From: Octopus bimaculoides
Lineage: Eukaryota
Length of the DNA stretch: 47,413 nucleotides
NCBI RefSeq assembly: GCF_001194135.2
Contig: NC_068994.1
Span: forward strand, 48,911,703 to 48,959,115
Reading direction: 5' to 3'
Below the pieces are notes generated by a model. It worked only from the letters and a program-made list of their open reading frames with translations. It was not told the origin of the DNA and searched no databases. Made by a program: the position numbers and the translations under genes. This document shows, in pieces, positions 4,404 to 43,469 of the stretch. The first letter of the stretch is position 1, and the number at the start of each line of letters is the position of its first letter.

Positions 4404-4950
4404 NNNNNNNNNNNNNNNNNNNNNNNNNNNNNNNNNNNNNNNNNNNNNNNNNNNNNNNNNNNNNNNNNNNNNNNNNNNNNNNNNNNNNNNNNNNNNNNNN
4501 NNNNNNNNNNNNNNNNNNNNNNNNNNNNNNNNNNNNNNNNNNNNNNNNNNNNNNNNNNNNNNNNNNNNNNNNNNNNNNNNNNNNNNNNNNNNNNNNNNNN
4601 NNNNNNNNNNNNNNNNNNNNNNNNNNNNNNNNNNNNNNNNNNNNNNNNNNNNNNNNNNNNNNNNNNNNNNNNNNNNNNNNNNNNNNNNNNNNNNNNNNNN
4701 NNNNNNNNNNNNNNNNNNNNNNNNNNNNNNNNNNNNNNNNNNNNNNNNNNNNNNNNNNNNNNNNNNNNNNNNNNNNNNNNNNNNNNNNNNNNNNNNNNNN
4801 NNNNNNNNNNNNNNNNNNNNNNNNNNNNNNNNNNNNNNNNNNNNNNNNNNNNNNNNNNNNNNNNNNNNNNNNNNNNNNNNNNNNNNNNNNNNNNNNNNNN
4901 NNNNNNNNNNNNNNNNNNNNNNNNNNNNNNNNNNNNNNNNNNNNNNNNNN

Positions 4951-5638: not shown

Positions 5639-5648
5639 NNNNNNNNNN

Positions 5649-7473: not shown

Positions 7474-9588
7474 ATGTTGCTGCCACCACCCTTACCACCA
7501 TCACCACATTGTATTCATAATTAAGTTTTAGACAAGATAATCATGTAATGAAGGAAATGAAAATTGCTCTGTAGTAGGTGTGGTATGTAAGTTTAATATA
7601 TATATATANNNNNNNNNNNNNNNNNNNNNNNNNNNNNNNNNNNNNNNNNNNNNNNNNNNNNNNNNNNNNNNNNNNNNNNNNNNNNNNNNNNNNNNNNNNN
7701 NNNNNNNNNNNNNNNNNNNNNNNNNNNNNNNNNNNNNNNNNNNNNNNNNNNNNNNNNNNNNNNNNNNNNNNNNNNNNNNNNNNNNNNNNNNNNNNNNNNN
7801 NNNNNNNNNNNNNNNNNNNNNNNNNNNNNNNNNNNNNNNNNNNNNNNNNNNNNNNNNNNNNNNNNNNNNNNNNNNNNNNNNNNNNNNNNNNNNNNNNNNN
7901 NNNNNNNNNNNNNNNNNNNNNNNNNNNNNNNNNNNNNNNNNNNNNNNNNNNNNNNNNNNNNNNNNNNNNNNNNNNNNNNTATATATATATATATATATAT
8001 ATATATTTTTATTATATATATATATATTTTTTTTTTATTATATATATGTATAGTGAAGATGGAGCTTACAGGGACTTAGCAATATATTTGACTTGACTCC
8101 CAGTCAGCTTTGTCGACGTTGTGACTTTTCTCTGGGTAAAGTCACATCATCAGTAACATTCACTGTTATGTTTTGAAATAATAAGCTTATTTTAGAACAT
8201 GCACAAGTGCACATGCATGCACACAATGATGGGAAACTGATTTAGGTTAACCATCTGCGCGAAACACACCAATGAAGATACGTCCAACATATTTAATGCT
8301 GCAGGGGGGGAAAAAATTCAGTTAATAATTCTTATACTGTGCAAGGCAATATTAACTTTTAATCCGCTGTTGGCAAATATTGGCAACAAATCCTGACATG
8401 TTCCAGTTTTATTAGGCCTCGTCAGTGAAGTATAACCTTCTGTCTTTGATTAGTGAAGAGATGTTTTTTTTAAAGATAGTTAACTTTATGGTTATGTTTT
8501 CCTATGGATAGCATTCATGAGTAATTTCCTTCAATCGTAATGTTTGGCAAAAAAAAAAAAAAAAGCTAAGAATATCAAGTTGAACTGAGGAGGTGTAACA
8601 AGAGCGAAACATGCCTGCTATTGTCACCAATACTTAGCAAGGTCGTATCACATTAGATAAAATATTAATTATTGAGCTAATATTTTTATTTCTTATTGCA
8701 TAGGTATTATTGATTCATTAGACTGTTCTCCCTTGCACTAAATCTGTGTGTGTGTTCGCGCGTGCTCACTCGCTCCTAATTTGTATATTTGTTGTTCTCC
8801 CGACTTTTGATCATCTCTGGTTTAATGTTATCTGCTTTTCGCTGTTGTCTCGCAAAAACTGTATTTCTGATATCAGTCAACACTTTCAGTCTGGTCTGAT
8901 TTATGTCCCCTTCCCGTGATTATTTTTCCGAGATTATCTCTCAGTATCAGGATTTCTTTGAAAGCTTCTACAAGAGAGGATCTTATGGGCTTTAATATCA
9001 GCGGAGTAGATTTTCTTTGTAATTCAGTCATTTGTTCCAAACATTGGTTCCAGTACTGTCTTGTTGGTCACTCTACCGTTGTTTGCCGCACATTTTATAA
9101 GACATTTCCATTAAAACTTAACTGTACCACCATTTGTGTGTGTGTGTGGGGGGGGGGACAGGAGAGGTAGCAGAAATGTTAGTGTGAAATAGTTTGCGTT
9201 TTCACCCGTTTTACTATCAAGAAGGAAGATTTCTTAAGTTACAAATTTACCTCTGCGTGTGTGCGTGCGCGCAAGAAAAGGATGTTATTAAAGGGACGTA
9301 ATTCTGTAGCAATAAGCAATTCTGTAGAACTGCAAACTCTTACTGATCTTTATTTTATCATCACTAGAAGGATGAACGTCTACGCCGATAAGGATCAGTA
9401 ATGATAATTATAATTATAATAAATAATTTCAAGGAAAATGGATTGCAGAATTAGTAAGAGTGTTGGACAAAGTTACTTCTTGTATTAAAGTTATATCTCT
9501 TTATGTTCCTAGTTTAAATTCTCCTGCGGTCGATTTCACCATTCGACATTTGTGCTTCCGTTAGTATGTTACTAGTCATGTAGAAAAA

Positions 9589-9876: not shown

Positions 9877-9998
9877 TTCTGAGTTCAAATTCTCCAAAGA
9901 TCGACTTTTTGTNNNNNNNNNNGCTCACTGGGGTCAATGTAATCGACAAGACCCCCCCCCTCCCCACAAATTTCAGGCCTTGTGTCTGTAATAGAAAG
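9877..9998 (+). mobile_element. SINE family B fragment
   Basis: ttctgagttcaaattc...tcgacttt...cactggggtcaatgtaatcgac...aaatttcaggccttgtg. Confidence 0.7.
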
Positions 9999-16639: not shown

Positions 16640-16746
16640 NNNNNNNNNNNNNNNNNNNNNNNNNNNNNNNNNNNNNNNNNNNNNNNNNNNNNNNNNNNNN
16701 NNNNNNNNNNNNNNNNNNNNNNNNNNNNNNNNNNNNNNNNNNNNNN

Positions 16747-18920: not shown

Positions 18921-19466
18921 GTTACTGCTGACATCTCAGCTTACCAGTGTTGAATGGACATACTCTGCACAGAATGTTGGTAATTTCTCCCAGCTTCTCT
19001 GTACTTCATTTCCCGTCAAATGCTGCAGTTTGGAAATGTCTCAGTAAACTAGAAACTACTTGGCTGGAGTCTTGGCAACCACTACATCAACGCTACTACT
19101 GCCACCACCACCACCACCACCACCACCACCATTGCAGCCACCCACAATAACAGCATCATTAACAACACTAACAGCATCATCATCAACAACAACAAAAATA
19201 TCACAACTGCTATTAAAGGCCACAACAGAAGTAACAGCAGTTCTCCTCTTACTACTACTACTACTACTACTACTCCCCCTGTCAGAATCACCAACACCGG
19301 GACTGCCGCCGCCACTGACACCAACAGCAAGAACAGTTGTTTCAGAGGTGATGACAACAATTACAGCAACAAAAACAACAGCATCACTACCAACATCAAC
19401 AGGAACAGCAGCAGCGGCGGCAGCAGCAACAGCAGCAGCAGCACCCAGAAGCACAAGTGTGAACAG
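18921..19466 (+). other. Probable 5' portion of the large exon (5' UTR or N-terminal extension) with upstream ATGs
   Basis: Strong acceptor tatttttcttctctttgcAG|G at 18920/18921. Upstream ATGs lie at 18954, 18974, 19020 and 19036. Confidence 0.55.
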
Positions 19467-22400
19467 ATGAGTCAAGCTGTTAGCGACAGAACCGGTGACA
19501 CCAAATGCAAAGTGTCTGTGACCACTGATGCAACTACTACTACTACCACCACCACTACTACCACCACCACTATTGCTACTGCCATCACTACCATTACTAC
19601 CACCTCACCAAATCTAGATACCAATAATAATAATAATAATAATAATAACAACAATAATAATAGTCTTGCTAACACTGCTATCAACAACAACAGCAACAAC
19701 AACATAAGAAGCACTTTTCTTACCTCCACTAGCGCCACCACTATTCCTAGTACTCCAACTACCATCTCTGCTTACATTATCAACGACAGCAGCAGCATCA
19801 TCAAAAACAGCAGTACTAGTAGTGCTTGTAGCAGTGGTAGTATCACCAGTGGCAATAATAATAGTGGCAGCAGCAGCAGTAGTAGTGCCAGTGACTGTGG
19901 TGGCGCTGGTTTCGGTGGTAGTGGTGGCAGTGGTAGATATCGGTTCATTGAGCCATCGGCAGTTACGGCCCTAACAAAAGCTGAACCGGTCAACCCGTTG
20001 CTGGCAACGCTTGGTGTGAAACCACTGCCACCGCCCCGACAGGCAAGGAACGGAGTGGTTCGGTCACCAAACTCTTGTGCCATAATCACTACCACCACCA
20101 CCACCAATAACAACAACAGCAACAACAATAATACTTGTAGCACTGCCAACACCAGCACAAACAGCAACTGTAATAAAAGTAAGTGCAGCAGCTTTGTTGA
20201 CATTTACAAAAAGCAGCTTGCATTCTTGGTGCAACAGTCTGGTGACAGCAAAAGCAGTGCCAGTGGAAGCAGCAAGAAACCGGCGGAACTTTTGGAAAAA
20301 AAGAAAAGGGTAGCAGACACCATTCTGCCGACTTCCACCCCAGGTTCACCTCCAACTCCAGCATCTCTACAGCCACTGCAGCCTTCGTCTTTACCATCTC
20401 CACTGCAGGCAGCACCGCTCCCAGCAGCTGTTGCAGAGTGTCACCAGGTCGTGACGAAGTCAAGCAGCAGCAGCAGCAACAGTAGGGAGTCTTTATTTGA
20501 AGGTCAGCAAAGACCTNNNNNNNNNNNNNNNNNNNNNNNNNNNNNNNNNNNNNNNNNNNNNNNNNNNNNNNNNNNNNNNNNNNNNNNNNNNNNNNNNNNN
20601 NNNNNNNNNNNNNNNNNNNNNNNNNNNNNNNNNNNNNNNNNNNNNNNNNNNNNNNNNNNNNNNNNNNNNNNNNNNNNNNNNNNNNNNNNNNNNNNNNNNN
20701 NNNNNNNNNNNNNNNNNNNNNNNNNNNNNNNNNNNNNNNNNNNNNNNNNNNNNNNNNNNNNNNNNNNNNNNNNNNNNNNNNNNNNNNNNNNNNNNNNNNN
20801 NNNNNNNNNNNNNNNNNNNNNNNNNNNNNNNNNNNNNNNNNNNNNNNNNNNNNNNNNNNNNNNNNNNNNNNNNNNNNNNNNNNNNNNNNNNNNNNNNNNN
20901 NNNNNNNNNNNNNNNNNNNNNNNNNNNNNNNNNNCAACAACACAGACTCTGCTGCATGCTTTGATCATGCCAGTACAACATTTGTAGATAATAAATTTAG
21001 TACAGAAAACAACAACAACAACAGCCACAGTACTAAGTTGGGTCCATCCCTTCTCAGCAAGAATACACAACACAACAACAACAACAACAACAGCAGCAGC
21101 AGCAGCAACAGTAGGGAGTCTTTATTTGAAGGTCAGCAAAGACCTGTCGTCACACCGTTACACGTCATCGACAGCAAGTGTGATGGCAGTAAGAGTAAGA
21201 CATCGCAGCAACAGCAGCAGAAACAACAACAGTCGTTACAACCACTACTACCACCACCACCACAACAACAACAACAAAAACTGCAACTTCACACAGAACA
21301 ACTGCAAGAAAAGCAAATGCCACCCACAGCCAAGCATCTTGTAGCGACAACAAGAACAACTGCCATAGCAGCTGCAGCAGTCAACAGAAGCAGTAGAGCA
21401 ACAAGTGAAGAAGAGCTTCATCCGTCACTGTGTATGATATCTTCAGCAGCAGCAGCAGAAGCAGCAATATTTTCTTGCCAGCAGCAAGATGATAGAAGAC
21501 AAAGAAATGTCTTGCATACGACGACGACAACAACAGCAACGTCTCTGTCACCACCATCACCACCACCACCACTATCAACAAGAGCAGTAGAAGCAACAAC
21601 AACAACAACAACACCAGCATCATCAGCTTTGTCGTCGCCGTCGTCATCGTCGTCGTCATCATCATCCTCCTCCTCGTCATCAACATTGTCATCAACAGCT
21701 GCAAAAATAACTGCAACAGAAACGTCAAAAGTGTCTGCAGTAACAACAGGTTCAGTTTCAGCAATAACAGTTTCGACACTAGCAGTAACTGCAACAGCAA
21801 CATCAGTAACAACAACAGTGTCATCACCATCACCATCATCTTCATCATCATCATTTTCATCAATTGCGCAACCACATCAGAAGATTATTTGTGCTATCAA
21901 CAACAATAGTACTACCAACAACAACAACACCACTTCCAACAGTATTGCGACTATCAACAGCAGCAAGACTAATACTAACGTTAGTACAACTGCCCTTAAG
22001 ACTCAGGCTGCAGGAGATGTGCATTCGGCTGTAGCGTCAGTCGAAGGTGGAATGAGCAGGAAGCGCAGTGCTGCTGGGACGACTGTTGTATCCAGTGGAA
22101 CCAGTGGTGTGAAGCGAATGATGTGCAAAGTAAGCAGCAGCACTGGAAGTAGTGCTGGTAGTGGTAGCACGAACAGAGACACCGGAATAGTAGTAGTGAC
22201 ACCTGACTTCTCTGCTTTGGGCGACACAGTGTCTGAAGAGAGTACAAGGAGCTACAGTGCCCCAACAGGTAATAACGGTCCAGGAAATTCCCTTGCCGCC
22301 GCTGCCCCCGAGGCCATCTCTAATGCTGCAACCACCCCTGATTTTTCTGTTGTTGTCCTACCCCATGCTACTTCACCTCGAAATGCTGTAGACTCTGTCA

Positions 22401-25400
22401 CAAGCCTTGCAGGTATAAGCAGCATCGGTGATGCCAATGGTGGTAACAGCAGCAGCAATATTGGAAACCACAACCACCACAGTAACGTTCATAGTAACCG
22501 GAACATTGATAAAACTCCAACAGCCATTGGTTTGAATCCTACCACTGGCCTTATAGTCAACATTGCAACCGAAATCATTAAATTCACCACTTGTACCACT
22601 ACTGCCATCGCCCCTACCACTAACATTGACTCTAACGTCCTTGCTACTAACACAACAACTCTGTGTTCACTTTCTAGTTGCATTGACACTGGTTCAAATA
22701 GCTGTTTAGGCAATGAGGTTGGCTCTGAAGCACAACAGTCACAACCACCACCACTACCACTACCACCAACACCACAACAACAGAAACAACTATCGCCACC
22801 ACTTCCTCTACAGCAAAATCAACTGTCATCACCACTACCGCTAAGACAAAATCAATTGTCACCACTACCACTACAACAGCAAAAACTATCACTACAGCCA
22901 CCACTACAACAAAAGCTGCCAACAGCAACAACACCACTGAAACAGCAAACACAGTCGTCACTACAACCACAGGACCCATTGGCATCCCTATCATTACAAC
23001 AACAACAACAACAACAACCACGGCTGCATCAAACACCTTCACCAGAACAACTTCAGCAACTACCACAACAAGAGGACAGACAAAATAATGTTGTGTTGGT
23101 GCCTGTTTCAAATGATGCAATTGTGACGCAGCAGCAGCAACAGCAGTCACAATTGCTGATGATGATGCACCAAAAATGTGACACGGACACTAACAACAGA
23201 GACAGCATCCCCAGCAGTAACACATACGGTGTAACGAGACTGGCTGCAGCCACCAACACCAACACCTCCACCACCAATGTCAGCAGCACTTGCACCTTCA
23301 CCACTGCCACCAATAACACCAATATCAACACTTCTCAAATCATATCACCACCATTACTACAGTGTTCACAGCCATTACCACCTCCACCACCACCACCACT
23401 ACCACTATCTGCACCATTGTTAAAAACTACCACACCAGCCACTTTCAGCAACCATGCATTGGACACTTTCCTCAGTCCACTTCACACAGACGGTACAATT
23501 GTTCCTGTCACAAATAGCACCTGTATTTTTCCAACGTCACTGTCAACGTCATCCTCCTCCTCTTCATCATCCTCCTCCTCTTCATCATCCTCATCCTCCT
23601 CTTCCTCAACCCCTTCTCTGTCATCTCCAGCCTTGTTTTCTCTACTTCCTCCATCATCTACAGCCTCTTCTTCACAAACTGTCAGCGTACCACTACAGAA
23701 TACCTCGACAAAACAAACCAACTCCATTTTGACGTCACAAGATGATTCTCTGTTCCTCAACAGAGGCAACGCAGAACCTTCAGTTCAATCGGCAATGGTA
23801 ATGCCACCATCTACTCCAATTCAGTGTCAAGTAATGCCAACAACAGAAGCAGCTTCTTCTGACTGCAGTAGCGATGAAAACTCTTATGGTGACTGTGCAA
23901 GCAGTGAGCCTTCTTCAAAACCGGATATAGATTCTCCAGAGTCGTTTGTTGCCTCAACTCAAACTGGGTTCGATAATAGTGAGCATGACGAAAGCACAGA
24001 AGACAGCATTGGCAACAGTGCCAGTTATACTGGAATATCGTCATCGGTATACACTAAAGACAATATTTCAAAAGTTCTAGACAGCCATTACAAAAGGATA
24101 AAAGACCCAGCCTTGAAGAGTACTTATGATATGGAGTGTGGCATGAAACTCTGTCAGGACTTCTGCATCAAAGATGGCAGCAATTTTGCTCGAGATGTGC
24201 TTTTGCACTCAAGTGTTGACCACATGTGCAAGTCCTACATTGACGATGATGATGATGCTGAAGATGATGACAATGTGTATAAATGTTCTTTCTCCTTGCC
24301 GAGGAAGAAAAACATAGATGCTCTTGACTGTAAGAAAACGTCACCAACTTCTGGTCTTGTCAGTGATTTGCTGAGGTGTACCACTGCCATTGCTGATGAT
24401 CACTCTTATTGTTGGTCAGTGTCAAAGACACAAGAACCAGAATCGCTCTTGCGAGACGCGCATCCGTGTGATGATGAAGTATCTGACTCGAGTTCGTTGG
24501 ATGACATTCCTGATAAGCAGGAACATTTAACTTTCTTAACTCAAAATGCATTTCTTAAAAACAACAACCCCAAAAGTGTTGAGACGAAGACTTCGTTTTT
24601 CTCACCTGCTTCCCAATCTATCCGGAAGCAGATTGCTGAGAAAGACAGGAAAATGCCGAGAAACTTATTCAAAGGGTGTGTTTCTTTAGATAACATTGGT
24701 TTTAATATTTGCAATAACAGCAGTAATTTTAAAATGGCAACAAATGCAACAAATATGTTATGTAAGACTATTCCAAATAACCTAATTAATAATAATGATA
24801 ATAATAATATTAATAATAGTAGTTGTAGTGGTAGTTTCAATAACAACAACAACAGTAATAATAATGTTGTTGACATCGTTACGCCAGATGGGGACGATTT
24901 TGTTACTGACTTTTCCTCCTTTGTACTTGAAGAGAAACCCCATTTAAATTTTAATAGCTATTACCCTTTTGAATCAAAGTTTGCTGATGAAAGGAAAGTC
25001 AATGGCTTATCTAGTCCAGTGCAGCTCTCTGAGTTGTCACCAAATTCTCGATCGCCCAAAATCACTCCTTTAAAGAATGTCAACAACAGAATGAACACAC
25101 AGAGCTCTCCCAAAATCGGAAGCTTTCGAATTGGCACCTATGGATCAATATCCAACAAAGAGTGGGAGGAAAACATCGATTCTGACACGCCGTTGACTGT
25201 TGGGAGCATCTCTATGTCGGATCAGAAGCGGGAGACATTCACGTTTTGCCACAAGAAAGATTTATCTGACAGATTATCTGCAAATGATGATCAGAAAAAT
25301 ACAGGTCTACTTTATGAGAATTCCATGGATGTTGATGACACTGTTAAAGCACTGAGCAGTGATGGCATGAATGGGTTCAAGTTTCAGGAAGAATCAGCAG

Positions 25401-27195
25401 GTACTGTTAACTACGCTCATATTCTTCATGACCATGACTACTGTATACGAACCGCAATTTCTCCAACCAAATCTGAACTTGCAAAAGAACTCTTTAGCTC
25501 TAAACTACTGCCATCATCAACTTCCTCAAAGGTATCTAATCTTTCTTCAACAAAGACAACAGTTGTCTCGAACGATTGTTCTAGTTCTCCTACAAACACC
25601 CCTGTTACCACAGAAGCAAAGACCTGGCGTAAACCTCGCAACAGTACCAGCAAGTCAGTCGACATATCTGAAGATGTGTCTGTTTCTAATTTACCTCTTA
25701 AAATTGAGGAGCCTGACCAAGAAAGTGCGGAAACCAGCGACGAGACCTCTCGTACCAACGAGAGTAAACTAAAAATAACTGGGAGCTTTCAAAATGATTA
25801 TGTATATTTTCTTAATAAAACTGCTCGCAGTAGAAGGCGATTCAGCCATGAGATCTTGCCAGATAAAAACCTTCAATCAAAGCACTACTCTGACATTGTT
25901 ATTCCTCACTTGACTGATGCAGACATTGAGGCTCTGAAGCGTCGGCAAAATAAATGCAGTCCAATGTTAGATGCATCAACTGCCTCCAAGAACCTTTGTG
26001 ATGGAAGTAACGACATGGAGATTGACAGTAAACTGATCCGCTCAGTTATGAACATGGATAATCCCAGTATGGACCCTGACATGGAATATACTCTTTCTGG
26101 ACTCGATAACGGATTCGTCTCCGAAAGCATGTCGACAAACTCGGAAGTCTGTTTTACGCCAGAAGACATGGATATTCTTTACAGTGCATTTAAAATAGTA
26201 GAGAATGCAAACGGCTTTCGAAGTTTGGATGAAATCCGAAAGACTGCCGACAGCTTTGATGGCATGCAGAAACAGATGAACTCTTCTGTGTCTATGCTTC
26301 AAGAGGACCAAATTAACCCCTGCTTGACGGCTGTCGATGAGAGTAAAGAGCCATTCGTAAGCTCTGATTGTATGAGCTCTGAGGAAGCCATCAATGAGTC
26401 AGCACAAGTCCATGCTCATGGTTTGCCTCCAGATAATAATTTACTAGATTTTGAAAATATGCCTATAAATGATATGCATAATATGATAAGTAATGAAAGG
26501 GACAAATTTAAGGCACCAACTCTTGCTTGTTCTCAAGAAAGTGATCTAAATCAATCTGATTTGAACAATTTATGCTCCAGCAACCCTAGTGCAAACCTGA
26601 CTGATTTGCAAATACCATCTTTGGAGAAATTTGACTTGTTAAGTGGTGATTTGCCATTAAAATTGGACAAACCAGACTTATTTCTTGAGCCTGCTGTCGA
26701 AGATATGTCTACAGTTCCTGACTGTAACCCGCCTTGGATTGTAACTGTTACCATGTTTTGGAATGATTTGCCTGCCATTATGATGGACCACCATCCATAC
26801 ATACGTCTTGTTGACATCCATAAACAAATTCTTCCTGCAAAAGATACAGGAATCCTTAAAAAACGTTGTCAGCTTCTTGGCCTTCCTGTACAGAACTGCA
26901 CAGAATTTCAACGTTACTTTTTAGTGCAGTATGGACGTGCATACAATTCTAAGAGTACATTGGTCATTTCAAAGGACGATGCCAAATCTTTAATTGGCTA
27001 CTATGTGAACCCACCACCCCGGGCACCGAAAGGTGAAGGTAGTGAAGACGAGCACGGAAGTCCAGAGAAACGTATTCTGAAAACAAATGGTTCTTTGGAT
27101 GGAAGAATGAAGAAACAAGCCAAAACCATTGGATCGAAGAGGCAATCTTTGCATAAGAAAAATCTGTCTTTGGAAAACCAGCTAAATCGAGAAAG
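19467..27195 (+). CDS. Large coding exon of a Ski/Sno/Dach-family-like low-complexity nuclear protein (interrupted by N gap 20517-20934)
   Basis: ATG at 19467; open to the gap, then open again from 20936 to the donor AG|GTATGA at 27195/27196 (>6.2 kb without a stop). Contains poly-T/N/S/Q/P tracts and a DHD-like domain near its 3' end. The start codon is not proven because the frame is open further upstream to 19053. Confidence 0.85.
26735..27004 (+). other. Divergent Ski/Sno/Dac homology (DHD) domain
   Basis: WIVTVTMFWNDLPAIMMDHHPYIRLVDIHKQILPAKDTGILKKRCQLLGLPVQNCTEFQRYFLVQYGRAYNSKSTLVISKDDAKSL aligns by eye with Ski [20 protein letters not shown]...LITKTDAERL and Dach KRLEITPVVCNVEQVRILR...LISRKDFETL. 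Confidence 0.7.
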
Positions 27196-27200
27196 GTATG

Positions 27201-27204
<4 letters not shown>

Positions 27205-27286
<82 letters not shown>
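27205..27286. repeat. (TA)n microsatellite immediately after the splice donor
   Basis: Direct reading. Confidence 0.95.
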
Positions 27287-27289
<3 letters not shown>

Positions 27290-27451
27290 TAATGTATTCT
27301 ACAGTTCTGTAAATGTGTTGTTTGTATCAGAAGAGGTAGGAGTGGTTAGCAATAAAGAAAATCAAAATATGTGTAACTTAATACTTTTAGAAATCTTTTC
27401 AGATAAAGGCATGGCTTTTGTGTGTGGTCTGTGTGTTGTGTGTGTGCATGT

Positions 27452-27585
27452 CTCTTTTACCCGTTACTTGTTTCAGTCATTAGACTGCAGCCATGTTGGA
27501 GCACTGCCCTGAAGAGCTCTTAGTTGAAAGAATCAACCCCAGTACTTTATTTTTAAGTTAAGCCTGATACTTGTACTATCAGTTG
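27452..27585 (-). mobile_element. SINE family A 3' fragment in the intron
   Basis: ttacttgtttcagtcattagactgcagccatgttggagcactgcc matches 3005-3050. Confidence 0.7.
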
Positions 27586-27613
27586 AAACCATGTCACTGC
27601 TGCTGCTGCAGTA

Positions 27614-27651
<38 letters not shown>

Positions 27652-27723
27652 ACTTGGAGGTGTCTGTATATGTATTCACATAGATATGTATTCTTATGTA
27701 CACAACATGTAAAGGTTAATTAA

Positions 27724-27943
27724 CCCTTTAGCATTCAGATTACTCTGCCAAATGTAATGCTTATTTATTCACACTGTTTTGAATTAATCGTGTGTTATCT
27801 TGTAGTTTCGAGATTTCAATGACATGATTGCTTATGATTAGAAGAATGTTGTAGGGTGAGTGTGAGAGGTTAGATCTGACCAGTTTGAAGATAAAACAGG
27901 TAGATTATTTTGGCTGGATATGGCTGGCTTAAATGCTAAAGGG
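27724..27943. mobile_element. piggyBac-type MITE (220 bp) in the intron
   Basis: TTAA target duplications at 27720-27723 and 27944-27947; perfect 12-bp TIRs CCCTTTAGCATT / AATGCTAAAGGG. Confidence 0.88.
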
Positions 27944-28200
27944 TTAATAGTCTACTCTCTCTCTCTCTCTCTCTCTGTCCACACACACACACACACACAC
28001 ACACACGTGTGTGTGTGTGATACATGTACATTATAGTGAAGCTATTTATAGGATTACTATCCTACTGATGTTCTTCTTTATATTTCAAATGTAGTTTCCC
28101 TTTCTATCTACTTATTTCTATTTACATATCTGTGTATGAATGTGTGTGTGTGTGTGTGTAAATATATATATGTATACATGTCTGTCTTTGTCTTTTGCAG

Positions 28201-29487
28201 GACATTAAGTGAGAAATCAGATGACCAGCCTGTTGAGAAGCAGTCGGCCAGCCCATCTAGATTTGATAGCACCACAGTGTCAGAGGCAGTAACTTCGACA
28301 ACGTCAGCGGCATCGAAAGCTCGTGTCACTTCCTCGTCGCCTCCCTTGACAAGCACCAGGTCACGCTTGCGTCACAAGAAGATAAATTTTCTAGACTTGA
28401 TCCGCGGTGAAGGTGGATCATCGTCTGCTTCATTGTTGCCGTCACACTCGTCATCATCTTCAGTTGCACCCACCTCTTCTGGCTCAGTAGACATTTCCCC
28501 ATTGGCTGGCACCATGCCGACCCATTCCTTGAGATCCTCTTCTGCATCCTCCCCTTCCTCCTCCTCCTCCTCCTCATCTTCATCGTCATCCACCCTGTCT
28601 GCTCTTTTCCCACCTCTCTCATCTTCACTGTCACCCCCGCCATCCCCGTCATCTAACAGTGTCCTCTCCTCCAACAAAATGCACAGTGCCGTGGCCCTTG
28701 CAGGAGAGGAGGCTTCATGCACCCGGAAGCAAGGGCTGGCTGTGGGCGCGAACCGATTGAAGAGTGAAAAATCATTTGCTGGCTCTCGTCAGCAGAAGAA
28801 CGGTAATAAGGGACAATTGAGCCCCTCACTGATGTTGCTACAGGAACAGCAACAAATGAGCAGCTTGCTAACGAGCGGGTGCAATAGCTCATTAAGGCCA
28901 TATCCTGATGCAATTAACAGCAGCAGCAATGGTGGTGGCAACATCAAAGTCAACAAGACCAAAAAGCCACCAAACGACTGCAAATTGGTCAGCGGAGGTG
29001 GCGGAGGAGGAGCAGGGCGACGTTGCTACAGCCAAAAGAATGGTCTGAATGGTAAGCGGCAGAAGAATGGCGATGAGAAAGAGGCAGCTGGTAGTCACTG
29101 TGTCGGCAAGTTGCCAGCGAAAATCTCCAAGTGGGCAAAGCCAAATCGAGGCATTGGTCGGCGAATTAAGAAGAACAATAGTAGCCGCCTGAAGGTGAAG
29201 CTAAAACTGCAAACCCCAAACCACAGTCTACCGGGCAGCACAAATGATTTCAGATTTATTAATTCCACCATCAACACCACCAACTATGACAGCAACTATA
29301 ACAACACTAACATTAATAATATTATTAATGGTAATATTAATAACAACAATAGTCACATTAACAAGAATATTAGCAGAAACAGAAACATCACTAATAATAA
29401 TAATAACAACAATAATAATTATAACAGTAGCAGCAGAAGCAACGCAGCTATTAACCCTTCCAAGTCCATCACAGCAACAAAAACACT

Positions 29488-29519
<32 letters not shown>

Positions 29520-30883
29520 CAGTATCATCAACCACAACAACCACAACACCAACAGTAACAACAAACAGTAGTAGTAAGCCTCCCAGTCATAAAAAACGTT
29601 TAAGAGTCAACAAAATGCAAAGCATTTTTGACGTTATTCATGTTCTCCGTGAGGATGTAGTAGCAGACAGGTGCATAGGTGTGCAGGCAGGAGAGCTTCT
29701 GACAAACTTGTACATAGATAGAGACTCCAAGTGCATCAAGTGCACAACTTGTACAGAACTGTTTTCTATCGTACACTTTATGCAGCATCATCAGCATTCA
29801 AACTCCGGTGTCAGTTGCCATAGTGACTTACCTTTGTCAGCTTCACCGTTATCGCAACAACAACAACAACAACACCAACACCAGCAACAACAACAACAGC
29901 AACAGCAGCAGCAGCAGTTGTCATCGCCATTCTTGTCATCATCGTCATCATTGTCAACACCACCAACATCTTTACCACCTTCACTTCCAACACCAGATAC
30001 AGTACGGGAGCTATCGTCAACCCCGTGCGTGTGGCGTTTGAAACTCAACAGCAATACTTCTGAGAGTCAACAGAAGTTGTGGAAACACTTCTTGAAGAAG
30101 CAACATCAACTGCAGAGCAGGCAGCAGTCTCCTTCGAAATCTGGCAATGGCATTAGATTTTGTACATCGGCTAACATGTTGCTCTTGGAAAGCCAGCCAT
30201 CCAACCTCAAGCAAGGTGGAACTAGTGCAAATTCTTCAACCTCTCGGGTGAGTTCCCGTAAACGCAAACAGAAACAGTTCTATCCAATTGAAAACTATGA
30301 ATTCAAAACTGCTCTTAGCTCTGCGGCACACAGCAGGAATTCAGCCGGCACCATCAGTAGTGAGCAAAGTAGCAGACACTATGGTGGCGCGGTTGTCAAA
30401 AGCCCTGTTGGTGCTGCTTCTGGCCGAGCGATGAGCTGTAGTATGGGGTTGAGTCCCTCCAAGAAAACCATGAAGCTTTCGCATCAGCCATGCGAAGGTG
30501 CAGCTATGTCTGTGTCGCCAGTGCCAGGCTCAGCCAAAGCTGTGATCCTCCCTGGCGTTAGTGGTTCATCTGCCTTCTCCACGCCACAACAAACTCTCAA
30601 TCCCACGGCAACCACAACCCATAAAAAGAACAGGAACAACAAAAGCAACCACACAACCATCAACAAAAGCCACAACACAACTACCAACAGAAACACCAAC
30701 ACCAACAACAACAACACTACAGCCACCAGCAAAAACAATTCAACCACCACTACCACCACTACTACCACCACCACTAACAACAATAGCAGTAGCAGTAGTT
30801 TATCAGAAAATGTTGTAACTTTAAAAAATGAACCAGAACTGCTGAACTTTACTGCATTGCAAACCGATGATTATGATATGTGA
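28201..30883 (+). CDS. Terminal coding exon of the same Ski/Dach-like gene
   Basis: Acceptor tctgtctttgtcttttgcAG|G at 28200/28201. Phase 2 matches the upstream donor (AG+G = Arg, then TLSEKSDDQ...). Open to TGA 30881-30883 and contains a SAND-like Zn module. Confidence 0.88.
29627..29797 (+). other. c-Ski SMAD4-binding (SAND-like) zinc module
   Basis: FDVIH...CIGVQAGELLTNLYIDRDSKCIKCTTCTELFSIVHFMQHHQH parallels Ski [45 protein letters not shown], with CxxC then F at +9 and H at +12 in the same register. Confidence 0.72.
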
Positions 30884-31163
30884 GGTTAAAAACAAAAAAA
30901 AAATAAAAAAAGGAAAGAGAAAAAAGGTTAAANNNNNNNNNNNNNNNNNNNNNNNNNNNNNNNNNNNNNNNNNNNNNNNNNNNNNNNNNNNNNNNNNNNN
31001 NNNNNNNNNNNNNNNNNNNNNNNNNNNNNNNNNNNNNNNNNNNNNNNNNNNNNNNNNNNNNNGGGTGGGAAGGACATTTCTAAAATGAAGGAAACATTTT
31101 CATTTTTTTCTTTTATTTTTTAAACTCAGTTTTAAAATATATTTAAAAAAAAAGAAATAGATC

Positions 31164-31430: not shown

Positions 31431-32356
31431 TCAGACATAATTTTCTTTTTATTTTTGCTGTGGATCTCTAAAGCAGATGATGAAGTTATAAATGATATGT
31501 AAATACTGGGTTAAAAAAAAAAAATCATTTTGGATTCAGAAATTTGGAAACTACCTACGTTTTAGGTCCACTGTTGCTCAAAAAAAAAAAAAAAAAANNN
31601 NNNNNNNNNNNNNNNNNNNNNNNNNNNNNNNNNNNNNNNNNNNNNNNNNNNNNNNNNNNNNNNNNNNNNNNNNNNNNNNNNNNNNNNNNNNNNNNNNNNN
31701 NNNNNNNNNNNNNNNNNNNNNNNNNNNNNNNNNNNNNNNNNNNNNNNNNNNNNNNNNNNNNNNNNNNNNNNNNNNNNNNNNNNNNNNNNNNNNNNNNNNN
31801 NNNNNNNNNNNNNNNNNNNNNNNNNNNNNNNNNNNNNNNNNNNNNNNNNNNNNNNNNNNNNNNNNNNNNNNNNNNNNNNNNNNNNNNNNNNNNNNNNNNN
31901 NNNNNNNNNNNNNNNNNNNNNNNNNNNNNNNNNNNNNNNNNNNNNNNNNNNNNNNNNNNNNNNNNNNNNNNNNNNNNNNNNNNNNNNNNNNNNNNNNNNN
32001 NNNNNNNNNNNNNNNNNNNNNNNNNNNNNNNNNNNNNNNNNNNNNNNNNNNNNNNNNNNNNNNNNNNNNNNNNNNNNNNNNNNNNNNNNNNNNNNNNNNN
32101 NNNNNNNNNNNNNNNNNNNNNNNNNNNNNNNNNNNNNNNNNNNNNNNNNNNNNNNNNNNNNNNNNNNNNNNNNNNNNNNNNNNNNNNNNNNNNNNNNNNN
32201 NNNNNNNNNNNNNNNNNNNNNNNNNNNNNNNNNNNNNNNNNNNNNAATAAACATAAACATGAGAAATAAAAATATATATATAAAGAGACAAAATCTGTAA
32301 ACTAATCCCTACATTAACGGTATTAATATAATTATTAAGAATTACACTCTAAAAAT

Positions 32357-40447: not shown

Positions 40448-42049
40448 TCATATTTCACAGTTAAAAGGCTTCTCACTTGTGTGTTTTCGTTGGTGTTTTT
40501 TCATGAGACTGCTTGAAATAAATGATTTCTCACACATCTCGCAACAAAATGGTTTTTCTCCAGTGTGTGTACGCAGGTGAATAACAAGATCCGAACTACT
40601 AATGAAAGATTTTTTACATATCTCGCAGTGGAAAGGTTTTTCTCCAGTGTGTCTTCGCATATGGATAATAAGATTTGAATTATTAACGAAAGCTTTCCCG
40701 CATATTTGACAGGGATAAGGCTTTTCTCCGGTGTGACTCCGCATATGAACTACAAGACTTGAATTAGTAACAAAAGATTTGCCGCACACTTCACACTCAG
40801 ACAATTTTTCTCCAGTGTGTATTCTTCTGTGAGTCGATAAATTATTGTTAGTGACAAAAGACTTTCCACAAATGTCACATTGATATGGTTTCTCCCCCGT
40901 GTGTTTACGTTTGTGAATGACAAAATTCCATTTCGTAATAAAAGATTGTCCGCATATTTCACAATGAAGCAGATTTTCTCCCGTGTGAATTCTTCTATGA
41001 GTTATCAAATTATTACTGGTAACAAAACATTTATCACATACTTCACAATGATATGGTTTCTCTCCTGTGTGTTGTCTACGAACATGGATTGCGAGTTTAG
41101 AATTATCGATGAACGATTTCCCACATATCTCACAGTGAAATGGGTTTTCTCCACTGTGGATTCTTTTGTGCCTTGTTAACTTACTATTATCGATAAAGCA
41201 CTTTTCACAGATTTCACACCGAAAGGGTTTCTCTCCAGAGTGTATCCTTTTATGTGCTTTTAAGTAACAGCTGGCAACAAAAGACTTCCCACACGTATCA
41301 CAGTGATAGGACTGTTCTCCTGTATGTCTACGTTTGTGGATTGCAAGCTTAGACTTTTCAATGAAAGATTTGTCACATATTTCACAGTGAAACGAATTTT
41401 CTCCAGTGTGTATTTTTTTGTGTTTGGTTAAATTATTGCTAGAGATAAAAGTCTTCCCACATATTTCACAGTGATAGGGCTTTTCTCCACTATGTATCCT
41501 TTTGTGTGTTGTTAGATTGTTGCTCGCGACAAAAGACTTTCCACACATTTCGCAGTGATACGGTTTTTCTCCAGTGTGTTTTCTCCTGTGTCTTGTCAAG
41601 AAACTCTTATAGAGAAAAGATTTCCCACATGTTTCACAGTGATATGACCTTTCTCCAATGTGGACTTTCTTATGTGTTGTTAAATTACTCATAGTCACAA
41701 AAGACTTTCCACAAATTTCACAGTGATAAGGACATTCTCCAGTGTGATGACGTATATGGACAACGAGGCTCCAATTTTTAAAAAAAGATTTCCCACAAAT
41801 TTGACACAGGTGTGATTTTTTCCCTTTATTGTGTTTATGTATTCTTTTGTGAACGGAGACTTCATGTTCCGAAGAGAAGGTTTTTCTGCAAATCTCGCAA
41901 CAGTATTCAGCAGTCATCTTCTCTACTGATTTTCGTTCAGACGATGCTTCATTAAATAGAGTTTCCTCAGCAGAATGAGTTTGAGTAACAGAATCAATAT
42001 TGTTAAAACCAGTTGCGTTAGAAGTTTCCAAGAGATTCATGTCCTCCAT
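40448..42049 (-). CDS. Tandem C2H2 zinc-finger protein, 533 aa, 17 complete fingers plus a truncated 18th
   Basis: Repeated CxxC-x12-H-x3-H units with TGEKP-type linkers at a 28-aa period; ~48-aa non-finger N-terminus with no KRAB/BTB/ZAD recognised. A possible acceptor (tttcgtAG) lies at 42076/42075 just upstream of the ATG. Confidence 0.95.
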   Translation of the reverse strand: MEDMNLLETSNATGFNNIDSVTQTHSAEETLFNEASSERKSVEKMTAEYCCEICRKTFSSEHEVSVHKRIHKHNKGKKSHLCQICGKSFFKNWSLVVHIRHHTGECPYHCEICGKSFVTMSNLTTHKKVHIGERSYHCETCGKSFLYKSFLTRHRRKHTGEKPYHCEMCGKSFVASNNLTTHKRIHSGEKPYHCEICGKTFISSNNLTKHKKIHTGENSFHCEICDKSFIEKSKLAIHKRRHTGEQSYHCDTCGKSFVASCYLKAHKRIHSGEKPFRCEICEKCFIDNSKLTRHKRIHSGENPFHCEICGKSFIDNSKLAIHVRRQHTGEKPYHCEVCDKCFVTSNNLITHRRIHTGENLLHCEICGQSFITKWNFVIHKRKHTGEKPYQCDICGKSFVTNNNLSTHRRIHTGEKLSECEVCGKSFVTNSSLVVHMRSHTGEKPYPCQICGKAFVNNSNLIIHMRRHTGEKPFHCEICKKSFISSSDLVIHLRTHTGEKPFCCEMCEKSFISSSLMKKHQRKHTSEKPFNCEI

Positions 42050-43469
42050 ATTAATTCCCGAGGAATTCTTAGAAGCTACGAAATGTTTGTGTAAATATTA
42101 CGGTTTAGTTTCTTGTCTCCGATAACATGTGACTCGGTTTACACACTTAGAAAAAAATACCATGTAGATATATTTTTCCTACTCACAATTACAATGTTGC
42201 TAACTCAAGACCAAGTGGCACGAATATTGATAAGGACTAAAAATTCTTCTACTTCTATTTTAAAAATACGACACTGGCCAAGGAATGCTATGTAAGCTAA
42301 ACGCAATAGAATGCCAATGAATTACCGGCATCGGAGGTTCTGGTGAAATCGGCATTGTTCAACAACAGGTTTCTTATGGGGGGCACCTATTCAGCACAGT
42401 GTGTAAAACAAGATATAATGCGTTAATTAAACCAGTATAAGGAAGAAAATATGTGTGTGTGTGTATCCAAAATAATACGTTACTTAGATCTGAAGGCAAG
42501 CTGAAAAATCAATAAGGATCTGGTTGGTGGTTAAAAACCCATCTCTCCTATCCTGTAAAAATGGGACGAAGATCAATAGACGATGCGATGTGGTTTGCTA
42601 TGAAATATGTAAAGATGCAGGTGTTAAAACACCGACCTTGAAAGATGTAGATCACCGTATGTTATCCAATAAGCATTAATGTTTACCTTATCATGAGATA
42701 ATCACTAGATACGATATAATGAAAATTAGTTGAAGGCAAAAGTTAGTTGACAAGTTGTAAAATAGGAACCAACAGGCGGTGTCACTGACGATTTGTTCTT
42801 GTATAAATAATGATACCGGTGAAAGAAGTAAAAAGTCCCTTACTTAATTTAATACATTTGAGAATACTTTCACAGTTTACGCTCTCATTTGTATTCGGCC
42901 AGCTCATGGTAAATTAAAAACCAAATCGCCGAGTAAAATAACAGTTGCGTGTTCATGAGAAAACATTTATGTGATTGTTCTCGTAGTGACTGATAGAATT
43001 AACTGATTAACTGTCATATTTCTTTTTCCTTGCTCTCATCGTACCATCTTACAAAAAAAAAAAAAAAAAAAAAAAAAANNNNNNNNNNNNNNNNNNNNNN
43101 NNNNNNNNNNNNNNNNNNNNNNNNNNNNNNNNNNNNNNNNNNNNNNNNNNNNNNNNNNNNNNNNNNNNNNNNNNNNNNNNNNNNNNNNNNNNNNNNNNNN
43201 NNNNNNNNNNNNNNNNNNNNNNNNNNNNNNNNNNNNNNNNNNNNNNNNNNNNNNNNNNNNNNNNNNNNNNNNNNNNNNNNNNNNNNNNNNNNNNNNNNNN
43301 NNNNNNNNNNNNNNNNNNNNNNNNNNNNNNNNNNNNNNNNNNNNNNNNNNNNNNNNNNNNNNNNNNNNNNNNNNNNNNNNNNNNNNNNNNNNNNNNNNNN
43401 NNNNNNNNNNNNNNNNNNNNNNNNNNNNNNNNNNNNNNNNNNNNNNNNNNNNNNNNNNNNNNNNNNNAT

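Follow-up and report, generated by a model that had tools for sequence, protein, structure and literature searches.

The stretch of DNA examined here (the window) comprises 47,413 nt of the Octopus bimaculoides genome, contig NC_068994.1, and our subject is a forward-strand gene at 19467-30883 that probably encodes a giant member of a lophotrochozoan branch of the Ski/Sno/Dachshund superfamily. Three long open reading frames (ORFs) lie on this strand, at 19467-20516 (where the frame runs into a gap of N bases), 21038-27292 and 28136-30883. The gene model that joins them is as follows.

19467-20516, + strand: left-hand segment of the large coding exon, 350 codons in frame 0 that start at the first ATG and run to the gap edge
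20517-20934: assembly gap of 418 N, whose flanks are in different frames as written
20936-27195, + strand: right-hand segment of the large coding exon in frame 2, from the first base past the gap to the splice donor
27196-28200, + strand: intron of 1,005 nt, GT...AG, phase 2, holding (TA)41, (GT)n and (CA)n
28201-30883, + strand: last coding exon, with the stop codon at 30881-30883

The second ORF, in frame 2, is free of stops back to 20936. The 1,668 codons of 21146-26150 contain no stop in the coding frame, whereas 59 and 156 occur in the two alternative frames; composition-matched shuffles of this interval gave a mean of 88 stops with a minimum of 68. Over 19467-20516 the corresponding counts are 0 in the coding frame versus 9 and 41. 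The splice donor, AAAG/GTATGA with its GT at 27196, and the acceptor, TTTTGCAG/G with its AG at 28199-28200, both fit the consensus, and removal of the intron joins AG to G as an AGG arginine codon with the frame kept. All tandem repeats within the exons have periods that are multiples of three, those of 19467-20516 included, and the intron carries period-2 repeats. Given this zero-stop frame, these in-frame splice sites and these repeat periods, there is good support for a structure of two exons and for the repeat-rich sequence being coding. We also considered a pseudogene or non-coding microsatellite DNA, which the stop-codon counts and repeat periods rule out. The first-pass annotation of this stretch had proposed a two-exon coding sequence (CDS); both exons and the intron are real, and the part of that proposal left unsupported is continuity, because the flank frames differ across the N gap.

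The gap is bordered by a duplicated 54-bp sequence.

20463-20516, + strand: copy 1, ending at the gap edge and encoding SSSSSNSRESLFEGQQRP
21092-21145, + strand: copy 2, 157 bp into the right-hand contig

The two copies are identical at 54 of 54 positions (BLASTN), and the sequence upstream of each differs. The left flank reads in frame 0 and the right one in frame 2, and a literal 418 N leaves the two one base out of register; since the length of the gap is merely estimated, this carries no information. When 20516 is joined to 21146 the result is in frame, a CDS of 9,783 nt encoding 3,260 amino acids (aa); all amino-acid positions given here refer to this product, with the 54-bp copy collapsed. 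We infer that the contig ending at a shared 54-mer marks a branch of a k-mer assembler at a heterozygous indel or a short repeat. Alternatively, there may be a true duplication with coding sequence hidden in the gap, in which case the protein would be at least 70 residues longer, plus the gap content. Both gap edges are open, and a single ORF running through the gap is plausible.

The product carries a Dachshund-homology domain (DHD).

26720-27025, + strand, aa 2209-2310: DHD of the PF25867 type, from family matches, an AlphaFold (AF2) model and Foldseek

A homology search with this domain returned 38 short proteins with E values down to 2.5e-51, all of them previously annotated as PF25867 'DHD'; members of this entry bear the UniRef name 'Putative Dachshund-homology domain-containing protein'. 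The window sequence keeps all 13 invariant columns of the family (R-L-V-D-x-H-x-Q-x2-P-A-K-D-T-G...C). From the family alignment AF2 produced a core, residues 31-125, with a predicted local distance difference test score (pLDDT) mostly >90. Foldseek against the PDB gave the following matches to this model, with target-normalised template-modelling (TM) scores.

SnoN DHD, 3eq5: E 1.6e-6, TM 0.76-0.85
SKI DHD, 1sbx: E 1.9e-6, TM 0.72
Dachshund DHD, 1l8r: E 5.7e-4, TM 0.72-0.78
Next match: E 0.17

Among PDB sequences no DHD match was found by sequence or profile search; the fold search alone succeeded. The Pfam profile PF02437 (Ski_Sno_DHD) gave no match at E<=10 in the whole ORFs or the isolated DHD, in a Pfam copy that lacks PF25867. 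It gave weak matches in 8 of 39 family DHDs, the best at E 0.0054 and below the cut-off, and was the only recurrent Pfam family. An hhalign comparison of the family DHD with the DHDs of 3eq5, 1sbx and 1l8r, which gave P 0.0016 across 48 columns, points the same way, and the signals at sequence level are faint but agree. At the level of the predicted model the DHD fold assignment is confirmed, and sequence membership of PF02437 is not confirmed. A DHD-like island had been proposed near this position, beginning ~2,400 aa into the protein. The island exists, with SnoN, SKI and Dachshund DHDs as the best PDB matches of its model; its start moves to aa 2209 once the 54-bp copy is collapsed, and the expected HMMER match to PF02437 gave way to the separate entry PF25867.

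Downstream of the DHD lies a SAND-like zinc module.

29615-30115, + strand, aa 2839-3005: SAND-like zinc module, from PF08782, PDB sequence matches and Foldseek
29732-29797, + strand: C-x2-C-x2-C...HHQH knuckle, which together with beta strands forms part of the module
~29822-30022, + strand: poly-Q/S/P insertion of ~60 aa that separates the knuckle from the final strand and helix
30023-30115, + strand: strand and helix with an invariant Trp, the end of the module

The third ORF matches PF08782 (c-SKI_SMAD_bind) at E 3.6e-8 and 33.9 bits (cut-off 25), with only model positions ~4-57 well aligned, and this profile comparison bears out the SAND-like island that had been suggested here. With phmmer, the PDB sequences of SnoN (5c4v_B, 4.5e-4) and Ski (1mr1_C, 0.03) were matched, and a profile of 26 family modules matched Ski at 4.2e-5 and SnoN at 8.2e-5; all 26 modules match PF08782 at E <= 0.01. 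The AF2 model has a mean pLDDT of 70, rising to 80-93 in the structured parts. Its top five Foldseek matches are SnoN/Ski SAND domains (5c4v, 1mr1; E 5.6e-3, probability 1.0, 70 columns), followed by the SAND domain of GMEB1. The conserved core of the module reads G-x-(V/L)-x3-Y-x4-S-x-C-(I/V)-x-C-x2-C-x8-F-x2-H-x-H, with a later helix that carries the invariant Trp; the window copy retains the invariant C, C, C, F, H, H and W, with HHQH at the H-x-H position. At 29855-29917 a (CAA/CAG)n repeat encodes ~25 residues, mostly Gln, an in-frame microsatellite inside a loop of the folded domain. Word-indexed homology searches gave no match with the window SAND region, nor with the family SAND alignment, where the candidate list was probably flooded by the window poly-Q. 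From the end of the DHD to the start of the module is ~528 aa, or 517 aa by the hidden Markov model (HMM) measure used for the family.

To place the gene in a family we rely on an exhaustive HMM search with the DHD profile across 1.84 billion representative proteins, which gave 124 clusters; at E<=1e-3 for the family profile, names were looked up for 23 of them. Named members come from bivalves (Dreissena, Mactra, Mercenaria XP_053407292.1, Pecten XP_033756628.1), a gastropod (Littorina XP_070212445.1), a brachiopod (Lingula XP_013389843.1), nemerteans (Lineus XP_064631056.1, Tubulanus) and annelids (Helobdella XP_009012123.1, Owenia, Dimorphilus). All 11 of the 11 named species are Lophotrochozoa, in agreement with an earlier suggestion of an unnamed lophotrochozoan subfamily. 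In databases the members appear as 'uncharacterized', 'hypothetical' or, for the Pecten protein, 'mucin-17-like'. Literature searches for PF25867 or for a lophotrochozoan family with DHD and SAND modules found no description; the domain is already catalogued in Pfam, and the architecture, motifs and phyletic restriction appear undescribed.

Full-length members have 1,300-2,523 aa, and their DHD starts 830-1,720 aa from the N-terminus. The SAND-like module follows 176-525 aa past the DHD in all members whose sequence extends far enough beyond it, the one exception being the Helobdella model P0094, in which no such module was detected. Judged from these sequences, the separated layout is the ancestral layout of a conserved family and is not peculiar to the window gene. 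A late DHD behind a long disordered N-terminal region and a distant SAND-like module are thus the rule, and the first-pass view of a 're-architected' one-off fails; the window copy is special in size only. The window DHD is 73-80% identical to mollusc members and ~57% to annelid, brachiopod and nemertean members. Low-entropy sequence makes up 54% of the window protein versus 14-26% of its relatives, and its source is in-frame trinucleotide repeats.

Genomic loci of relatives bear on the intron. In a mollusc-like assembly, locus L001 has a DHD exon, an intron and a SAND exon arranged as in the window, and the ORFs of many relatives stop shortly past the DHD, which fits a conserved intron there. 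Both L001 (14834-16927, mollusc-type) and L002 (8979-12113, annelid-type) have more exons than the window gene, the DHD having an exon to itself; ahead of the DHD the exon structure varies, and the intron just past it is common to both. A more distant protein of 922 aa from a Logan assembly, P0149, has a DHD that is 32% identical (E 1.8e-5) and a SAND-like module 377 aa later, and has no D/EHxY motif of the kind described below; it may belong to a second subfamily or come from another phylum.

These family data bear directly on whether the gene could be an ordinary Ski, SnoN or SKOR orthologue with species-specific insertions. Such an orthologue would account for the presence of both Ski/Sno/SKOR domains in the right order, but the separated architecture and the DHD signature RLVDIHKQxLPAKDTGILKKRC recur in four phyla, the window DHD lacks a PF02437 match, and none of the clusters looked up was named Ski, Sno, SKOR or Dach. 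We consider this explanation most improbable, and already contradicted. The family DHD profile and the fold matches instead uphold the earlier proposal of a highly divergent Ski-superfamily member.

Conservation extends beyond the two domains, to a third island and a series of short motifs.

24395-24412, + strand, aa 1434: DDHSYC, a D/EHxY motif of HCF-1-binding type, positional equivalent of family motif B
25097-26209, + strand, aa 1668-2038: third conserved island, from BLASTP coverage and tblastn, common to up to 35 family proteins
25427-25444, + strand, aa 1778: HDHDYC, family motif C ([DE]HDY), which matches the HCF-1-binding motif
25781-25840, + strand, aa 1896: GSFQNDYVYFLNKTARSRRR, a conserved motif with a basic cluster behind it (GSFQNDYVYF...RSRRR)
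28364-28402, + strand, aa 2422: RLRHKKINFLDLI, post-DHD motif, present in 11 relatives and also in loci L001 and L002
30251-30304, + strand, aa 3051: SSRKRKQKQFYPIENYEF, conserved C-terminal motif with a basic run resembling a nuclear localisation signal

The claim that the protein holds only two globular islands was therefore correct in that both exist and incomplete in that it passed over the island at 25097-26209 and the short motifs at 28364-28402 and 30251-30304. The Littorina counterpart of RLRHKKINFLDLI is RLRHKKINFLEML. In the window the order is DHSYC, HDHDYC, GSFQNDYVYF...RSRRR, DHD, RLRHKKINFLDLI, SAND-like module and SSRKRKQKQFYPIENYEF; in relatives it is DHxY motifs, FQNDxVYF...RRR, DHD, RHKKINFL, SAND-like zinc module and SSRKRK...Y.F. 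All four motifs of the family set (DHDYC, FQ(N/D)xFVYF...RRR, RHKKINFL and SSRKRK...Y.F) are present in the window in the expected order.

Among 51 family proteins, D/EHxY occurs 114 times, against 4.4 expected by shuffling (maximum 11), and control patterns occur 0-4 times. The motifs occupy two or three conserved positions family-wide, two of them in the window copy. All family proteins listed have motif C, at a distance of 330-650 aa ahead of the DHD; it is DHDY in nearly all members and EHDY in two, and Cys is usually the next residue. HCF-1 recognises E/DHxY, the HCF-1-binding motif, through its Kelch domain (PMC2814863), and the PGC-1 family has DHDYC as its putative HCF-1 site (PMC7139572). 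Because these conserved motifs correspond to the HCF-1-binding motif, we propose that the protein may act as an HCF-1-recruiting scaffold.

The 5' end of the gene is the least secure part of the model. The ATG at 19467 is merely the first ATG, and the frame is open upstream to ~19050 (~140 codons), so the coding sequence may extend upstream of 19467 to a splice acceptor. The interval 19050-19466 contains (CCA)10, (TAC)8 and (CAG)12 repeats, and its translation is T/N/S-rich like that past 19467. Full-length relatives from several lineages start with a strongly conserved FNPLD(L/V)LAxAA, gastropod-type members with MDFS/NxLDLLAS, and bivalve relatives have an extra EKMLDEHNYG motif ~90 aa in. 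Neither FNPLD(L/V)LAxAA, for which loose patterns were included, nor EKMLDEHNYG was found in six frames of the whole window. Since the family N-terminal motif is not encoded in the window, a 5' exon is probably missing from the model; it may lie in one of the many gaps or outside the window, or alternatively may have been lost in this lineage. The N-termini of seven relatives (P0047, P0050, P0051, P0057, P0063, P0103 and P0104) read FNPLD(L/V)LA(S/A)AA.LQ, which is absent from the window and resembles a PxDLS-type CtBP-binding motif (P-L-D-L-L).

The same region raises the question of whether the real gene begins only at ~25100, the upstream ORF or the left piece being another gene, an untranslated region or a misassembled haplotype. 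Such an artefact would fit the lack of homology for aa 1-1667, the low complexity of 66% over the same residues, the gap with its duplicated flank and the missing N-terminal motif. Nevertheless, the frame that opens at 20936 continues without a stop across the non-conserved sequence and on into both the conserved island and the DHD, and the repeats there all have period 3n. Relatives likewise have 900-1,700 poorly conserved residues ahead of the DHD, the positional equivalent of motif B lies at aa 1434, and the truly unlinked part amounts to only the 350 codons left of the gap. We regard an artefact of this kind as decidedly unlikely.

Given the match to c-SKI_SMAD_bind, we also weighed whether the protein could be a Smad4-binding co-repressor of TGF-beta/BMP signalling like Ski and SnoN, its SAND-like module docking on the Smad4 MH2 domain. 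The module lies above the Pfam threshold for that family, it is closest in both sequence and fold to the SAND domains crystallised with Smad4 (those of Ski and SnoN), and the DHD-then-SAND order is that of Ski. SnoN touches Smad4 through beta5 and the loop next to that strand, Arg314-Trp318, whose Trp318 is buried in a cleft of Smad4 (PMC5387736). The alignment of our family to Ski/SnoN, however, is limited to the ~40-residue zinc-knuckle core, and there is no conserved counterpart of Arg314-Trp318; past H-x-H the family has a longer, unrelated segment that reads DVSGGLVTVNSPQ.... At the position of the contact loop the window has G-V-S-C-H-S (the Ski equivalent is R-T-C-H-W), and the segment is then broken by the ~60 aa low-complexity insertion. 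The contact-loop alignment is ambiguous, in that the later window strand PCVWRL could mimic TCHWGF; relatives have Leu/Ile there. Ski's R-Smad-binding N-terminus and coiled-coil tail are also not evident: the window tail, aa 3010-3260, is 43% S/T/N and 50% low-entropy, a composition unlike that of a coiled coil, with no coiled-coil predictor having been run. Because the SnoN contact residues are not conserved in the family, the Smad4 mechanism is unsupported. Ski/SnoN-type Smad4 binding appears unlikely from the aligned residues, and so does a role as a Smad4 co-repressor as a whole. The TGF-beta/BMP function originally suggested for this gene finds no support: neither Arg314 nor Trp318 is conserved, the alignment is confined to the zinc-knuckle core, and the loop carries the insertion.

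These data allow us to hypothesise what the gene encodes. The locus would specify a very long, mostly disordered nuclear protein of ~3,260 aa, with the gap flank collapsed, and would be the local orthologue of an apparently Lophotrochozoa-restricted Ski/Sno/Dachshund branch, the PF25867 'DHD' proteins. The protein may serve as a chromatin or transcription co-regulator scaffold in which the D/EHxY motifs (DHDYC, DHSYC) would recruit the HCF-1 Kelch domain. Its DHD and zinc module would offer surfaces for binding proteins or DNA, and nuclear localisation signals would be supplied by the basic clusters. We judge it fairly probable that a lophotrochozoan Ski-superfamily branch, working as a co-regulator scaffold that recruits HCF-1, is the best explanation as a whole. 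A further step, in which this lineage-restricted branch was rewired from Smad co-repression to HCF-1 recruitment and its giant disordered scaffold links HCF-1 chromatin complexes, through two or three conserved D/EHxY motifs, to DHD/SAND partners, is possible and, in our view, doubtful.

Several points weigh against the scaffold interpretation. The proposed function is a prediction from motifs and folds, and the DHDYC context is His/Cys-rich (H-x3-[HD]-DHDYC), so that DHDYC could have a structural role or bind metal instead of being a linear HCF-1 motif. On the side of homology, sequence similarity of the DHD to canonical DHDs is marginal: the PF02437 search was blank for the window copy, and the hhalign probability against the PDB DHDs was only 16%. 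The TM-score of the SAND model is only moderate, at 0.46 to 5c4v/1mr1. The restriction to Lophotrochozoa is provisional because names were looked up for only 23 of the 124 clusters. On the side of the gene model, continuity across the gap is putative, aa 1-1667 have no homologue (the codons left of the gap show no similarity to family members) and the family FNPLDLLA motif is absent from the window, so that the 5' end is probably incomplete or partly wrong.

Elsewhere in the window, a single-exon ORF of 533 aa at 40448-42049 on the minus strand encodes ~15 tandem C2H2 zinc fingers (zf-H2C2_2, E 1e-124) and is of the KRAB-less poly-ZNF type; expansions of poly-ZNF genes are typical of some mollusc genomes. 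The 47 kb contain eleven N gaps, and several of the long ORFs listed, on either strand, simply reflect reading through N runs or low-complexity repeats.

1629-1638, 2329-2964, 4404-4950, 5639-5648, 7609-7979 and 9913-9922: N gaps
16640-16746, 20517-20934, 30933-31062, 31598-32245 and 43079-43467: N gaps, continued

Central co-regulators of development belong to this superfamily, Ski, SnoN, SKOR and Dachshund among them, and descriptions of it are usually based on vertebrate and fly members. If our interpretation is correct, a spiralian-restricted branch with its hallmark domains far apart, its Smad4 loop replaced and HCF-1-type motifs gained would add a lineage-specific regulator to spiralian developmental biology. 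It would also be a natural experiment on DHD and SAND modules working uncoupled. Since the family is annotated only as 'uncharacterized' or 'mucin-17-like', its architecture can correct those annotations.

Compared with known systems, the window protein resembles the HCF-1 partners E2F1/4, the THAP proteins and the PGC-1 family in its D/E-H-x-Y motifs, and its motif C, DHDYC, is identical to the putative PGC-1 site; what is common is a linear motif and not homology, and HCF-1 binding of the window protein is predicted only. With Dachshund/DACH1-2 it has the DHD fold in common (1l8r), but the Dachshund DHD is N-terminal and there is no SAND module, the opposite of the window gene on both counts. 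Nothing resembling Dach box 2 appeared in the general Pfam scans, no dedicated search having been made.

SKIDA1 is long and low-complexity, with a divergent N-terminal DHD and no SAND-like module. By general description it is alike in its long low-complexity sequence and DHD, and the SAND-like module belongs to the window gene only. SKI, SnoN (SKIL) and SKOR1-2 (Fussel, CORL) have in common with the window protein the DHD fold (TM 0.72-0.85 to 1sbx and 3eq5), a SAND-type zinc module (C-x2-C-x2-C...H-x-H) in the same N-to-C order and, presumably, a nuclear co-regulator role. In contrast to them, the window DHD is only ~16-17% identical and without a PF02437 match, its two domains are ~520 aa apart rather than a few tens, and its DHD lies ~2,200 aa from the N-terminus where theirs is near it; the Smad4-contact residues are not conserved in it, and it has conserved HCF-1-type motifs. 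The PF25867 relatives are alike in motif order, in the intron just past the DHD and in DHD identity. Among them the window copy stands out as the longest seen (~3,260 aa against a maximum of 2,523 aa), and its SAND-like module carries a poly-Q/S/P insertion and HHQH in place of H-x-H.

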